Shown here: positions 37,062-43,632 of the stretch, piece by piece
How the letters are laid out: each line of letters begins with the position of its first letter
Position numbering within the stretch: position 1 is the first letter of the stretch
Assembly (NCBI RefSeq): GCF_039654945.1
Contig: NW_027361910.1
Coordinates: forward strand, 1,550,001 to 1,614,000
Reading direction: 5' to 3'
Length of the DNA: 64,000 nt
DNA from: Dendrobates tinctorius
Taxonomy: Eukaryota
Position numbers and translations under genes: made by a program
The notes under the pieces: generated by a model
Told to the model about the DNA's origin: nothing
The model's database searches: none
Seen by the model: the letters and a program-made list of their open reading frames with translations, nothing else

Positions 37062-37667
37062 CAAGGGAAAGAGAAAATGCTGCTGCCAGACTCCATTGGT
37101 GATGGCCTACCTCCTCTGGAAATAAAAGTATGACAATCTGTAAAATTAGAGATGGGACACATATTTACACTTTAGATATTTGGTCACTCCCGCTAAAATC
37201 TGTAGGGTAGGCCAACAATAATCCAATGTGTTCAGCCATACAAGGGTGTATCTTGACTGTATGTAAATCACTAGCAGGCAGCAGTAAGACTGGTCATCAT
37301 AAAGGTAAAAGGGTGGTCCAGTTAGCTGGTCTACCAAATTTCTACCTAGCTTCAAGTAGGTACTGGTTTGATAATAGAACATCCACAGCTTGGCTTCATA
37401 TTGAAAATGACACCAATAATCCACTTTTAGCTAAAGATATTTTTTTCAGTTTCCTATTTCAGAAACCAACCAGGGAACCTTCCCACCCCATTTTTAGGGC
37501 TATGATACATGCTTTGATGATTCTTGCCAAACCCCCAAAACTTTAGTAGGTTATGAAATTCCCTCTTTCTCTATTAATTATGATATATAATATCCCACTG
37601 TCAGATTCCTGGATCAAATCAGGCATCAAAAGGATTGGAAACATTTATGATGGGACTAAATTCCTCA
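37062..37667 (+). mobile_element. Degenerate L1-like ORF2 3' fragment, probably continuing at ~42001-42450
   Basis: WIKSGIKRIGNIYDGTKFL-type post-RT motif near 37610; heavily decayed. Confidence 0.35.
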
Positions 37668-40600
37668 CGTCTCCCCAGCTACCTGGAGACTTCTCCTGGA
37701 CACATTGACACAACGCATCAGCAGTATCACTGCTGATCAACACACACATCAGTCTCCATCTCAAGGCCATCCACCTTGAGATACATAATGGTCATTCATG
37801 ACTCTGCCATTCATCCTCTCTCCTCAGACATCCACACAGCGCCCCTAACGGACACAGTGGTCACTACACCACATACCTCCCCCCTCTGTTCAAACCTGTG
37901 GGGTTGAACACACAGCATAACCCCAGGATCTCGAGACCGGGTACTCACTACACCTTGCCCCCCAGGTCGAGAGAACCATCTCCATCTGTCATACGCCTCA
38001 TTCCTACGTTAGGCCTCCCCCACCCCCAGCGGTCAGAATATCGGCCCTGATCTTTGGCCCTCCAGTCACAGCCTGTCTGCGTCATCAGACACTATTTAGT
38101 CACCACATACCTCTCCCTGTTTGTTCTGTTCCCCGACCAGCTCCCCCGGTCAGTACGGTCATTAGTCTTAGTTACGCCCACTGTCTTGCTTGAGTTTGAC
38201 TCATTCACCTTCTCACAGGAACTTCGGTCTCTCAATGTCATCCTGCCAGTCGAACTACCACTTGCTGACATTCTTCGGCCATCTGCCATGTCACTTCTTG
38301 GAGGAACAGTTCGGGTCCTTACATCTTGGGTTGAAGGCGGCCGCCACCTGGTGTTCCGTACCTCTTTATTGATTCGCCGACGGTCCCGCCTCAACTGCTC
38401 AATCTCTTGCAGGTACCCTACTCGATACTCCACGAGCATCCGAAAGTCTCTCAGGCTCTCCACGGAGCCAACCACCATGATGGGAATCCTTCTCACTTCA
38501 CTGGATACTTGGTCTTCATCATCAGGAGGGATCCTCTTCCTCACCACACTGGAGATATTGGCAAGGTCTTGCATTACCTTCCCGAGTCTTCCAACGATTC
38601 TCCCAATCAGAGCTTTGGGTACCGGAACCACATCTTTCCGCAAACCCAGCCGATCCATAGCTTCCTTTGCTAACTCTTGTCATCGAGCAGCTTTCATATT
38701 ACTCCGCCTGACCAGCTGTTTGGTGTGAAGACATTGCAGATGCATTTCTTTCAGGACAGCTACTTGGTTTGATGTATCCTCTCTGGCTGATATTATCACC
38801 AACTGCCGAGTCTCAGGCGCCCAGTGCACCTTACACGCTTTGACCGCCTCTTTGAAAGCCTCATGCACACCTTCCTCCGCACAGGCTTCTTGCATATCTT
38901 CTGGTACATTAATTACAGACTTGAAGGTCGTGGCCTTGCTCTCTTCCAGGCCAGGAGGCTCTGGCTTTACCATGGACACTTCCCCCACTACAGTTGACCC
39001 GACTGGGTGACTGTCTTCTTCAGTCCTTAGCTCACAAACTTCACAAGATTTTAGCTCTTCATGACTCTTTGCCAAGATGGATACTGGCCGTTCCGTCTTG
39101 TTATCACTCGCGCTCACCTGCGGTAAGTCTTTGTCCAACTTCCTCTCCTGCCAAAGATCTCTTACAGTTTCTTTGAGTTCTTCTATCTCTTCCCTAAGGG
39201 TCTTGTTCACACTTTGCAAGGTGGACAGGTGACCTCTGATCTCCAAGACTTCTTTCTCAAGCTCCTCGACCCTGTGCTCGGCCGTTTGTCTCAAGACTCT
39301 TTCTCATTTGACATGTTCATCCACCTCTTCTCTGAGGGCCTTATTTAGTCCTTGCCATGTTACCATGTGACCTTTTAGCTCAGAGACTTCTTTCTCAAGC
39401 CCTTCTACTCTGTGCTCCCTTTCTCTCTCAGAGCCACAGACACCCACAGAGATTGAGTCACCCCGACATGCCGAGTCATCCCTCCAGTTACCCACTAACC
39501 GTGTGAATACTTCAGCCGTCTTATCAACCAGGTCAACATCAGTCCAGTCACGAGATGTCAGGTCTGTCCATTGGGCAGGCGTACCCCTTCTGGTCACTTC
39601 TACCTCTGACCTCTCCACATCAGGAGCCGTCACCGTCTTAATATCTGTTAGCCCAACCGTAGAAACATCTCCATCCTCGTACCATAGGTCATCAAACACG
39701 ACAAAGTCCCGGTCCCCCTCCAAGGTATACACTAAGTCTGGTGGTATACCTCCATCTTGGCACTCACTGCCTCCGGGCCCCTCAAACACCACTCTGTCTA
39801 GCACATAGTTTACAGTGACCCCATGCTTACAGCAAACCTGGGCCATTTTCTCGGTCAGACAGAAAGTGAGAGGAGTTCCTAACAGAGTCACCTGACTCTT
39901 TGAGTCAAACCGTCCCGAGATTCCTCCCTGGTGCAGCATCACGGTACACACTTGCGGTCCGTCATGCACCAGAAAGTATAACCCACATTCTGAAAACACT
40001 CTACACGAACACTGCTGTTCCTCTTTTGACACACCGGCCCCTTTCTGGACCACCCTGATTTGGGTCATCACCCCCCTCTGGGACTCCACCCCCTTTTGGG
40101 CTACTACCCTGATTTGGGTCACCACCCGCCTCTGGGACTCCACTTCTTTTTGGGTTACCACCCCAACTTGGGACTCCACCCCCTTTTGGGCTACCACCCC
40201 GATTTGGGCCACCGCCCCCTTTCGGGATTTCCCCATGTCCAATATACCGGTCTTCTCAGACCACAGTTCACGCCACACAGTTTATGTCTCTTACGATACC
40301 ACACAAGTCCTTGTTGGCACCACCACAGCTCCTGCTGTCATCGATCTTCGACACCACCGGCTGCTGTTCACACACAGCTGCTGGTGTCACCTTTGCAACC
40401 CCACTGAGTTACCGGAAGCCGCTTGTCCCCTTTGTAACCCCACCGAGTTACAGCAAGCCGCTTGTCACATTCTTGACTCCCACTGAACCACCGCAGGCTG
40501 AGTGGAGAAAATAAAATAAAACACACCCCACAAAACTCACGTGTCCTGTCTATTCAGGACGTTCCGTCTCTGCCTGAGACCGTCCAACACACAGGGCGCA

Positions 40601-42000
40601 CCGGGTGCGATTCAGGGAGCGACCCTCCTCCCAGGGTCTCCCCACACACCGGCCTCACCAGGTCCAGGGGCTCTTCAGGGCATCTGTCTCCGCCTGAGAC
40701 TGCCCAGCACTCACGCCTCACCAGGTCCAAGGTCATACCACGTGCTCCCGGGATCTGATTCTTTCTCCTAGAATCTCCCAACACTGACCCTCCAGGACCT
40801 TTCCTCACTGAACCCTCCAGGTACACAGTCTTACTCACTGACCCAGGTCAGTACCACATGAACACCTGTCCATTACCTGTGTCGGTCACACAGGTCCTCG
40901 GGTACCTCTTCTCCTCAGAGGCACCCTAGCAGTCACCAGTCTCTTTCTCCTGGGGAAGCGGTCGCACTGGGCTCACCGATCCAGACAGTGCCTTACTCAC
41001 TAGGCCGCCCCATGGTTCCCGAACCACAGCCAGACAGTGACTTCCCCAAATGGAGGCTGTCACAGGCTCTGCTCACACACGTGGCCGGTCAGCATATTAC
41101 CCGGCTTTCTCGACCGTCAGCCCTCCTGGCTCAGCGTTGCCCTTAGCAACCGAATTTTGCAGTCCTCTTCCGTTGCTCCCAGCAACAAGGCTACAATATT
41201 GCCCTTTGCAATCTCCACCAATTGTGAGGTAGCGCTGTCATTCACATCGGGGATCACTCGCTTAGCCGCCACAAAACGAGATCCGGCACGGGTTTTCCAT
41301 AAAACCATTATAGTCCATGCAGTTTATTTATGCAGCATAAACCCAAGCAAGCAACATAAAGTTCATATCAGCATAGCGTCCTTGACAGAGCTTCTCTCTG
41401 TCCTCCCTGCGGTCACACAGGTTGGCATACAAAGACTCTTCAGCCTCATAGTTATCTCACCCACATCCGGGTTTCCTCATGGCTGTTTCTCCATGCTGCA
41501 GACATCCATTCCCTCCCGGGAATCACCAGGCACGTGCAGCCATTACGCACAGCCACTCCACATGCTGTTAGCCAGGAGACACATCTCCCAGTGGGACCTT
41601 TCACAACGGACCAACCAGGTCCCTGCATTCACCACATGTGACCTACCCGGGCCACCTTATATGGTCCGTAGCCACGCCCACCTGGTCACATGGCTATGAC
41701 CTCATCACAGGTCCTTGAACCATTCACACAAACTTTGGAATAGCGTTCTTAAACACACCCCCTGGGTGGGCTTGTAGGTAACTGGGTCCGTCCGTCTCCC
41801 CAGTTACCTGGAGACTTCTCCCGGACACATTGACACAACACGTCAGCAGTATCACTGCTGACCAACACACACATCGGTCTCCATCTCAAGGCCACCCACC
41901 TTGAGATACATAATGGTCATTCATGACTCTGCCATTCATCCTCTCTCCTCGGACATCCACACAGCACCCCTTAGCGGACACAGTGGTCACTACACCACAC
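37668..42000 (-). mobile_element. Non-autonomous LTR element carrying a fragile-X-family-derived ORF
   Basis: 5' LTR 42000-41223 (TGTGG...CTCACA); PBS TGGTGGAGATTGC (tRNA-Ala-like) at ~41203-41220; PPT AGAGGGGGGAGG just before the 3' LTR; 3' LTR 37872-37668 is truncated but highly similar to 42000-41793; no RT/IN motifs. Confidence 0.9.
38092..40236 (-). pseudogene. ~714-codon chimeric ORF: N-terminal repeats, Cys-containing domain, two coiled-coil repeats, FXR/FMR1-like KH0, KH2 and NES, Arg/Ser-rich tail; two in-frame TGA
   Basis: The 324-, 204- and 188-aa ORFs share one frame and are separated by single TGA codons (39304-39306, 38680-38682). VPEDMQEACAEEGVHEAFKEAVKAC, VPKALIGRIVGRLGKVMQD and LVEYRVGYLQEIEQLR align by eye to FXR1 as recalled. 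Confidence 0.85.
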
Positions 42001-43632
42001 TATCCATAGAGAGGAAACATGGCATACCTATCGTTATCTATTTGCCTTATATTAATTTGAAAAGTGCTGTCACAACCGTGACATAAGACAATGCGCTATG
42101 TTCGCTGCTTCAACAATACTCCAAAAATATTTATTTCATAACATTAGGACCCTTGCTGTTCATAAAAAAACTTTAACATTCATAACTGAAATAGAAAAAA
42201 GTAGTTTAATGTAGTTTGCCTGTCAATTCTGGTTGCTGCTAAGGCCATAAATCTGTCACCTCCACCATTCTTCTGCAGCTGAGGATAAAGGTGATCTCTA
42301 CCGACCATAAATCTGTCATATTCAAGAATTCTTCTGCAGTCAAGCCTGTTCTGTATCCATTTTCTTTAATTGCCTGTTCATACCAGGGGGGGTCCCCTTG
42401 CATCAGGGTCATATGGAGGTCATAGCCTTGCTTCAGTATTCAGTATTCAATATCGACTATGAAATGGCTTATATATTTTATCTCTATAACCGTCAATCAA
42501 TGTGTTCAAGAGTGGTGCCGAGATAGATGTCACAAGTAGAGATGAGCGAACCTTTCAAGGATCGGTTCAGTTCGGATCGGAATCTCAATGTTTGCCGAAC
42601 GGTTCGAAGAACATACCCAAACCCCAAACTTCAATGGGAGGCAGAACCAAATGCATAGACAACACCTTCAGGGCGGTAAAAAGCTTCCAAAACAGCTAAC
42701 ATTAGGGGCAGACACCAGGAAAAGTGGAATCAATTGACCCATCAATTGCACTATAGATAAACACTATAAACAAATTAATGTGGATTCCCCTGTATTTGTA
42801 ATAACCAGTCAGGAAAAACTGACAGTGGCAGGCTGCAGCCCTCAGCTGTCAGCATTAGTAAGGCTGGTTATTAATGAGATTGATGTGATATAATGGTTTC
42901 TGCCCTGTCAACAAACACCATGTGGTGGCAGTAAAGAAGAATTGAGTCACTTTAGAGACAAGTGATTCAGAAGATACAAACAGTGGCATGTACAATTTTG
43001 GACACTCCTTATCAAAATTACTGTTATTGTGAACAGCTAATAAAGTTGAAGATGAAATTATCTCTAAAGGCCAAAAGTTAAAGATGACACATCTCCTTTG
43101 TAATTTAGGCAAAATAAAAAGTATATTTTTTTCATCTTTAAAATGTTAAAAATTACAAAAAAGGAAAATGGACAGAAACAAAAATGTGTGCACCCTGCAT
43201 GGTTAGTACCTAGTAGCACCCTCTTTTGAAAGTATCACAACTTGTAAATGCTTTTTGCAGCCAGCCAAGAGTCTTTGAATTCTGGTTTGAGAGATTTTCA
43301 TGCATTCTTCTTTGGAAAATTCTTCCAGGTCTGTGAAATTCCTGGGTCATCTTGCAGGCACTGCTATTTTGAGGTCCAGCAACAGATTTTCAATGATGTC
43401 CAGATAAGAGGACTTTGAGAGCCATTGCACAATCTTCAGTTTGCACCTTTTGAGGTAGTCTAGTTTGACGTGTTTAGGATCATTATCCATTTGTAGAAGC
43501 CAGGCTAATTAAGGTCTGAAACCTTGGTCAAAGTTATCTGGGCACACAAATCTGCAAAGGTGACCAAACTTTTGCATCAGCCCATTTTCCTTTTTGTAAT
43601 TTTTGAAGTGTAAATAAATATATATATATATA

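Follow-up and report, generated by a model that had tools for sequence, protein, structure and literature searches.

A high-copy LTR retroelement family of poison frogs carrying a fragile-X-type KH0-KH2 RNA-binding module

We report on a long terminal repeat (LTR) retroelement located in a stretch of 64,000 nucleotides (nt) from the poison frog Dendrobates tinctorius (NCBI RefSeq assembly GCF_039654945.1, contig NW_027361910.1, positions 1,550,001 to 1,614,000 of the forward strand). The whole stretch is called the window below, and coordinates are counted from its first letter. The element lies on the minus strand, and its single long open reading frame (ORF) encodes a KH0-KH2 RNA-binding module of the fragile-X family, for which the host gene FXR1 is the favoured source. 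The reading that we prefer, with a probability of about 0.6, is that the element belongs to a non-autonomous, high-copy LTR family of dendrobatid frogs, whose FXR1-derived protein serves the propagation of the element itself as a factor forming ribonucleoprotein (RNP) particles. A first-pass annotation of the window, made by a model from the letters alone, had proposed that a mobile LTR family took up an FXR module through an RNA intermediate, and this proposal is supported by the results below.

The ORF was found as the first-pass annotation had described it, i.e. one frame broken by just two internal TGA codons and ending in TAG. For all analyses, it was read through with an X at both TGA stops. 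The frame and its fragile-X module are laid out as follows:

40236-38092, minus strand: single long frame, 714 codons plus TAG (ATG at 40236, TAG at 38094-38092).
39306-39304, minus strand: internal TGA stop 1 (frame reading).
38937-38683, minus strand: KH0, corresponding to host FXR1 exons 5-7 (PF17904, KH_9, 5e-15; PDB 4qw2, 1.4e-14).
38682-38680, minus strand: internal TGA stop 2 (frame reading).
38676-38671, minus strand: exon 7/exon 9 junction, exon 8 (KH1 core) absent (FXR1 alignment and D. tinctorius FXR1 exon map, L009).
38643-38410, minus strand: KH2, GxxG loop kept, short variable loop as in FXR1 (PDB 2qnd, 1.9e-12; FXR1 alignment).
38421-38095, minus strand: post-KH2 helix (nuclear export signal region) and basic Ser/Arg-rich tail, related to the FXR C-terminal core.

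Both likenesses on which the first-pass annotation had relied, to KH0 and to a KH2 with its GxxG loop, proved to be significant. The Pfam match to KH0, found in the middle of the three ORF pieces, reached 56 bits for a cutoff of 24, the PDB hits there being N-terminal structures of FMRP; the KH2 match, in the last piece, was to the crystal structure of the FMRP KH1-KH2 pair. The GxxG loop is retained in 9 of 10 family sequences. The C-terminal core (PF12235) gave a weak match in the window, 18 bits against a cutoff of 29.6, and 33 bits in the relative P0007; FXR_C1 gave no match. Neither Agenet/Tudor family (PF18336, PF05641) matched the window or any element protein, whereas host FXR2 shows both, and KH1, i.e. 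FXR1 exon 8 (residues 211-267), is missing from every element sequence. An AlphaFold model of the module of P0003, another relative, had a predicted local distance difference test (pLDDT) score above 90 across residues 10-205, and consists of two KH folds linked by one long helix. Submitted to Foldseek, this model retrieved 2qnd (1.9e-11) and the KH0 of 4qvz (1.3 Å over 78 residues, 47% identity).

Judged by depth, the element is clearly a repeat of high copy number whose copies have diverged. In four public runs, carrying three species labels, contigs pile up on it at a depth 100- to 10,000-fold that of the flanks, and within the window it is the 5′ LTR that has the highest depth. In run X1, the summed contig depth, which is not a copy number, was 3,500-99,000 on the element versus 0.5-20 on unique flanks. 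There, 18,001 contig pieces matched the window at 85-100% identity, distributed as follows:

at least 99% identity: 2,094 pieces.
95-99% identity: 4,885 pieces.
90-95% identity: 7,598 pieces.
below 90% identity: 3,424 pieces.

To obtain intact relatives, 1.84 billion representatives were searched exhaustively with HMMER, which yielded eight element-type proteins, defined by a KH0 joined directly to KH2. All eight come from D. tinctorius, Ranitomeya imitator or R. variabilis, and their annotation calls them uncharacterised, 'fxr1-like' or 'restin homolog'; a chimeric gene model is among them. At each of the eight loci examined the coding region is intronless, and intact copies have one long ORF only, of 700-917 codons. 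An LTR pair was found in 7 of the 8 (the pair of L008 is fragmentary, and that of L005 could not be delimited amid self-matches of satellite repeats). Complete pairs measure 677-913 bp, and identity between the two LTRs is 97.8-99.6% where one continuous pair is present (L001, L002, L004, L006, L007). Target duplications of 4 bp were read as TAAC in L002 and ATAT in L003, L006 and L007, with 3 of 4 bases matching in L001. Gene models of some relatives extend into the 3′ LTR. Copies sit at unrelated loci, many of them in (AT)n tracts. With such depth, and with LTR-flanked intronless relatives in three dendrobatid species, the mobile multicopy family announced by the first-pass annotation is borne out, and the window copy is not a single neutral one.

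Some observations were made on the surroundings of these copies. Three of the five readable insertions lie in (AT)n tracts with ATAT duplicated (L003 at ~6938/11305, L006 at 4187/9222, L007 at 4406/9209), which suggests a preference of the element for AT-microsatellite target sites. Long tandem arrays with a period of ~32-42 nt are found a few kb from the element in L001 (13971-18688), L004 (1413-3155) and L005 (9513-13806). Finally, P0036 of R. imitator (CAJ0932843.1) is an element-type KH2 fragment fused to a model named as a long-chain-fatty-acid-CoA ligase; it is probably an annotation chimera, produced when an element was inserted into a host gene or close to one.

Selection was examined on codon alignments of seven intact relatives and the window, by the Nei-Gojobori method with bootstrap intervals. 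Ratios of nonsynonymous to synonymous substitution rates (dN/dS) between subfamilies were as follows:

KH0-to-helix module: 0.23-0.40, upper bounds 0.33-0.61, for dS 0.5-1.4.
N-terminal part: 0.3-0.75, less constrained than the module.
Coiled-coil part: 0.3-0.7, less constrained than the module.

The dN/dS among copies, a check proposed by the first-pass annotation, is well below 1 for the module, and ORFs of 700-917 codons stay open across the divergence of subfamilies. These values come from relatives picked as annotated intact genes and from pairs that share branches and so lack independence; in some of these pairs dS is above 1, i.e. near saturation. Very close pairs are uninformative (P0004/P0167, dN/dS 1.01 [0.24-4.17]). 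Taken as they stand, the ratios indicate that the module is kept under purifying selection, and was so during the split into Dendrobates and Ranitomeya subfamilies. Such selection argues that the protein matters for the propagation of the element.

To place the module among fragile-X proteins, a maximum-likelihood tree was built from 37 rows and 523 columns. All the element modules group together in a single clade (100/100 support), and this clade falls within tetrapod FXR1 (97/92), separate from FXR2 and FMR1. The stem of this clade is long, 1.15 changes per site. In approximately unbiased (AU) tests, union of the element clade with FXR2 was marginally rejected (p 0.047), and union with FMR1 was not (p 0.10). 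Because of these two values, FXR1 as the source of the module is favoured but not proven. In the alignment, the short KH2 loop fits FXR1 or FXR2, not FMR1. Among the frog sequences placed in the tree, P0010 of Pyxicephalus adspersus (483 amino acids) grouped with mammalian FMR1 (100/100, branch of 0.24), and is probably a frog FMR1 fragment.

The exon structure of the host gene is informative on how the module was acquired. In the D. tinctorius FXR1 gene, which spans 83 kb, residue 210 is the last one encoded by exon 7, and the KH1 core (residues 211-267) is contributed by exon 8. All elements pass directly from the match to the end of exon 7 to the match to the beginning of exon 9, 3 more residues being lost, and the module is continuous across the remaining FXR1 exon junctions. 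This exon 7/9 join and these uninterrupted junctions point to a spliced FXR1 mRNA devoid of exon 8 as the template. As the absence of exon 8 is common to all subfamilies, the sequences indicate that capture took place once, from such a messenger, before the subfamilies split. Capture via RNA, inferred in the first-pass annotation from the lack of introns, thereby gains a second argument, the coincidence of the KH1 loss with exon 8.

What else does the ORF encode? Upstream of the module, three regions were recognised:

40227-40041, minus strand: 18-nt (hexapeptide) tandem repeats at the ORF N-terminus (repeat search).
40017-39622, minus strand: probable degenerate retropepsin-like remnant (aligns with residues 62-186 of P0004).
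39417-39177, minus strand: coiled-coil unit in two copies, a 103-nt repeat 75% identical (repeat search and coiled-coil-type Pfam matches).

Equivalent hexapeptide repeats are present in P0003, P0152, P0004 and P0005. The coiled coil precedes KH0 and is kept in all relatives; internal stop 1 of the window copy sits between its two units. The segment of ~130 residues that follows the hexapeptide repeats is, in our judgement, probably what is left of a retropepsin. In P0004 and P0167 of R. imitator, it holds DSG and IIGRD motifs ~64 residues apart, which is the signature and spacing of retropepsins, and a feature search with the language-model Atlas returned retroviral aspartyl protease clusters as all of its top ten matches (score 0.93). 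In the window copy, as in those of D. tinctorius, this active-site motif has degenerated. For this protease-like part, Pfam searched up to an E value of 10 gave nothing, profile and single-sequence searches of PDB gave chance matches only, and AlphaFold run on a 7-row alignment reached a pLDDT of 34, so that the identification rests on the two motifs and the language-model search. If it is right, the host sequence displaced everything downstream of the protease.

Neither the three ORF pieces of the window, nor the N-terminal parts of the relatives, nor the leader ORFs matched a Pfam family for gag, reverse transcriptase, RNase H or integrase, and the leader ORFs of intact copies matched no gag-like Pfam family. 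The absence of gag and pol motifs stated in the first-pass annotation thus holds for these families, and has to be amended for the N-terminal third of the ORF, which aligns with the retropepsin-like segment. Likewise, its description of the FXR module as the only cargo was slightly overstated, given the hexapeptide repeats, the probable protease remnant and the coiled coil that share the ORF.

Between the 5′ LTR and the ORF, the leader contains a repeated motif, revealed by motif comparison:

40473-40395, minus strand: two tandem 39-nt units, each a 21-nt spacer and an 18-nt hairpin with a 7-bp stem.

The window and 7 of the 8 element loci, from all three species, have this 39-nt unit in 1-5 tandem copies. 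Its 21-nt spacer is almost invariant, and the hairpin exists in two versions that differ by compensatory double changes at 3 of the 7 stem pairs. All cells of the stems pair (49/49), compared to 14-57% after a shift of the partner by 1-3 columns. The covariation amounts in effect to one compensated switch, so its support for the hairpin is moderate. We regard the hairpin as a candidate cis-acting RNA signal for packaging or recognition. Rfam gave no match within the element.

The anatomy of the window copy, established in part by comparison with the intact relatives, is the following:

37668-41999, minus strand: whole LTR retroelement, an old inactive copy.
41999-41223, minus strand: full 5′ LTR of 777 bp, TGTGG...CACA (blastn comparison with L002 and L001, two intact relatives; ends read).
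41661-41656, minus strand: TATAAG, inside the 5′ LTR (read on the LTR).
41328-41323, minus strand: AATAAA, inside the 5′ LTR (read on the LTR).
41220-41203, minus strand: site resembling a primer-binding site (PBS), starting with TGGTGG, 2 nt past the LTR end (equal position in relatives).
41202-40237, minus strand: non-coding leader of ~1 kb (ORF lists and Pfam, window and intact copies).
37887-37876, minus strand: polypurine tract, 2 nt upstream of the 3′ LTR (purine run).
37873-37668, minus strand: 3′ LTR, only its first 206 nt kept (94.7% identical to the 5′ LTR).

The direct repeat pair 37668-37846/41793-41971 brackets ~4.1 kb; once extended, it covers 207 nt and is 94.7% identical (10 mismatches, 1 gap). 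The window holds an LTR pair of the TG...CA type, with a 3′ member shortened to 206 nt. At the matching places, the relatives L001, L002, L003, L006, L007 and L008 have both a PBS-like site beginning with TGGTG and a polypurine tract. The layout given by the first-pass annotation (LTR, PBS, internal region, polypurine tract, LTR) was correct for the repeat pair and the polypurine tract. Its LTR of ~210 bp turned out to be one of 777 bp when intact relatives were compared, and its PBS, placed at ~41790, falls inside the LTR. No target-site duplication is visible around the window copy, because the end of the 3′ LTR is missing (cut at 37668). Repeated DNA was also seen just outside the element, at 42532-42900 (depth 6,000-20,000, runs X1 and X5), and at 37488-37681, adjoining the shortened 3′ LTR (depth ~500-1,300, same runs). 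As these flanking stretches are themselves repeated, the element is nested among other repeats.

How could such an element propagate? In the absence of gag, reverse transcriptase, RNase H and integrase, its enzymes would have to come in trans from an autonomous element, with reverse transcriptase and integrase supplied by this helper. The element protein would multimerise by means of its coiled coil, while the KH domains together with the basic tail would bind RNA. Its role would then resemble that of Gag/nucleocapsid or LINE ORF1p, namely to form RNPs for the element, and it may mark or protect the element transcript, perhaps via the leader hairpin repeats, for reverse transcription by the helper. 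We favour this reading because a protein that combines a coiled coil with two KH folds and a basic tail parallels LINE ORF1p in architecture and Gag/nucleocapsid in role. A bolder version is that the FXR-built protein replaces capsid and nucleocapsid, recognises its own leader hairpins and possibly docks on FXR granules of germ cells, so that an element without gag and pol out-competes its helper and reaches thousands of copies; we hold this full chain to be rather unlikely.

Several points weigh against the RNP reading, beyond the AU tests, the failed protease searches and the composition of the dN/dS data set reported above. The window copy itself is dead, with two stops, a shortened 3′ LTR and LTRs ~5% diverged. 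The search for an autonomous partner, suggested in the first-pass annotation, came back empty: the protease-like part of P0004, used as a query, found only two FXR-carrying proteins, and tblastn of N-terminal parts against the examined loci and the window matched elements only. Trans-mobilisation is thus an inference, and the protein is presumed to be made and to bind RNA. Finally, the runs that hold the element are presumed, by guess, to be RNA.

Other explanations were weighed against the same data. The one that fares best, though we give it a low probability, is that the element protein works through host FXR1, FMRP or FXR2, either riding with them into germ-cell granules or polysomes, or serving as a decoy that blunts their repression; it is compatible with the RNP reading. 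The region formed by KH0 and the following helix mediates dimerisation in the FXR family, and this region is retained and conserved in the element. Prediction of a complex between P0003 (residues 455-740) and D. tinctorius FXR1 (residues 1-420) gave a score of 0.42, versus 0.00 for the best control, with runs agreeing in at least 67% of contacts and a partner pLDDT of at least 62. This is a weak signal: scores up to 0.60 are more often wrong than right according to the calibration of the tool, and the pass may mirror solved FMRP dimers. Moreover, the Agenet domains, which are part of the host interaction surface, are absent from the element, and the stem branch of 1.15 changes per site shows how widely the module has diverged from FXR1.

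It is much less probable that the FXR1 fragment is a neutral passenger, trapped in an element whose amplification depends on cis signals only, with a coding sequence devoid of any role. Many non-autonomous LTR families (ETn, VL30, plant LARDs) need no protein of their own, the window copy has stops, and the dN/dS of close pairs such as P0004/P0167 is indistinguishable from 1. However, a passenger would hardly keep its ORF open at subfamily dS values of 0.5-1.4, with a module dN/dS of 0.23-0.40 whose upper bounds do not exceed 0.61, nor the GxxG loop in 9 of 10 sequences. As for an expanded host family of FXR1-like genes, or a one-off processed pseudogene caught between two solo LTRs, we consider it very improbable: NCBI does annotate copies as genes ('RNA-binding protein fxr1-like', 'restin homolog'), but 7 of 8 copies lie within a matched LTR pair, with PBS-like sites, polypurine tracts and 4-bp duplications where checked, gene models run into the 3′ LTR, depth is 100- to 10,000-fold and the loci are unrelated, the one-off pseudogene being refuted by this repeat-family depth and by the LTR-flanked copies at unrelated loci.

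Transduction of host cDNA into LTR elements and non-autonomous LTR families are both known already. A close parallel is with replication-defective transducing retroviruses of the Gag-Onc type, where a spliced host cDNA replaces pol between the LTRs, the cargo continues the frame of a residual viral ORF and enzymes come from a helper. Unlike these, the frog carrier is amplified in the germline to very high copy, in at least two frog genera; its cargo is an RNA-binding module and not a growth gene, it shows the signs of long-term purifying selection, and no gag is left. ETn/MusD, VL30, LARD, TRIM and BARE-2 elements share with it LTRs, a PBS, a polypurine tract, a leader, the lack of reverse transcriptase and integrase, and high copy reached via a helper. 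They contain non-coding filler or a defective gag, whereas the frog family has a host-derived domain pair, under selection, in a long ORF. Uptake of host or foreign coding sequence is also seen in plant LTR gene capture (maize Bs1) and in the LTR elements with extra ORFs of bdelloid rotifers; plant captures are mostly low-copy fragments without clear selection.

At the protein level, LINE-1 ORF1p has the same succession of a coiled coil, an RNA-binding domain and a basic C-terminal part, which suits assembly of an RNP on its own RNA. The two are not homologous (ORF1p uses an RNA recognition motif, the frog protein KH0-KH2), and ORF1p belongs to an autonomous non-LTR element, in contrast to the frog protein, whose function is proposed here by analogy. 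With host FXR1 (P0168 of D. tinctorius), the element protein shares a homologous KH0, a short-loop KH2, the helix after it and a portion of the C-terminal core; it differs by the lack of Agenet/Tudor and KH1, by the absence of introns, by an identity of 32-42% and by its fusion to element-derived sequence. In a full-text literature search, no publication connected FXR1 to LTR capture or to dendrobatids, and no vertebrate case of FXR or KH cargo emerged; the genome papers of D. tinctorius and Oophaga pumilio make no mention of FXR. A vertebrate germline LTR family of high copy with a selected host RNA-binding module therefore appears to be undescribed.

Capture of host genes by retroelements is usually a dead end, leaving single copies, fragments or somatic transduction of oncogenes. 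Here, a captured RNA-binding module has been kept under selection by a germline LTR family, which spread to very high copy number in the giant genomes of poison frogs. On the practical side, copies are listed in frog genome annotations as 'fxr1-like', 'restin homolog' or uncharacterised genes. More broadly, the family offers a natural experiment on the minimum that a retroelement must encode itself, on how non-autonomous elements compete for helper machinery, and on what the fragile-X KH0-KH2 pair does without Agenet and KH1.

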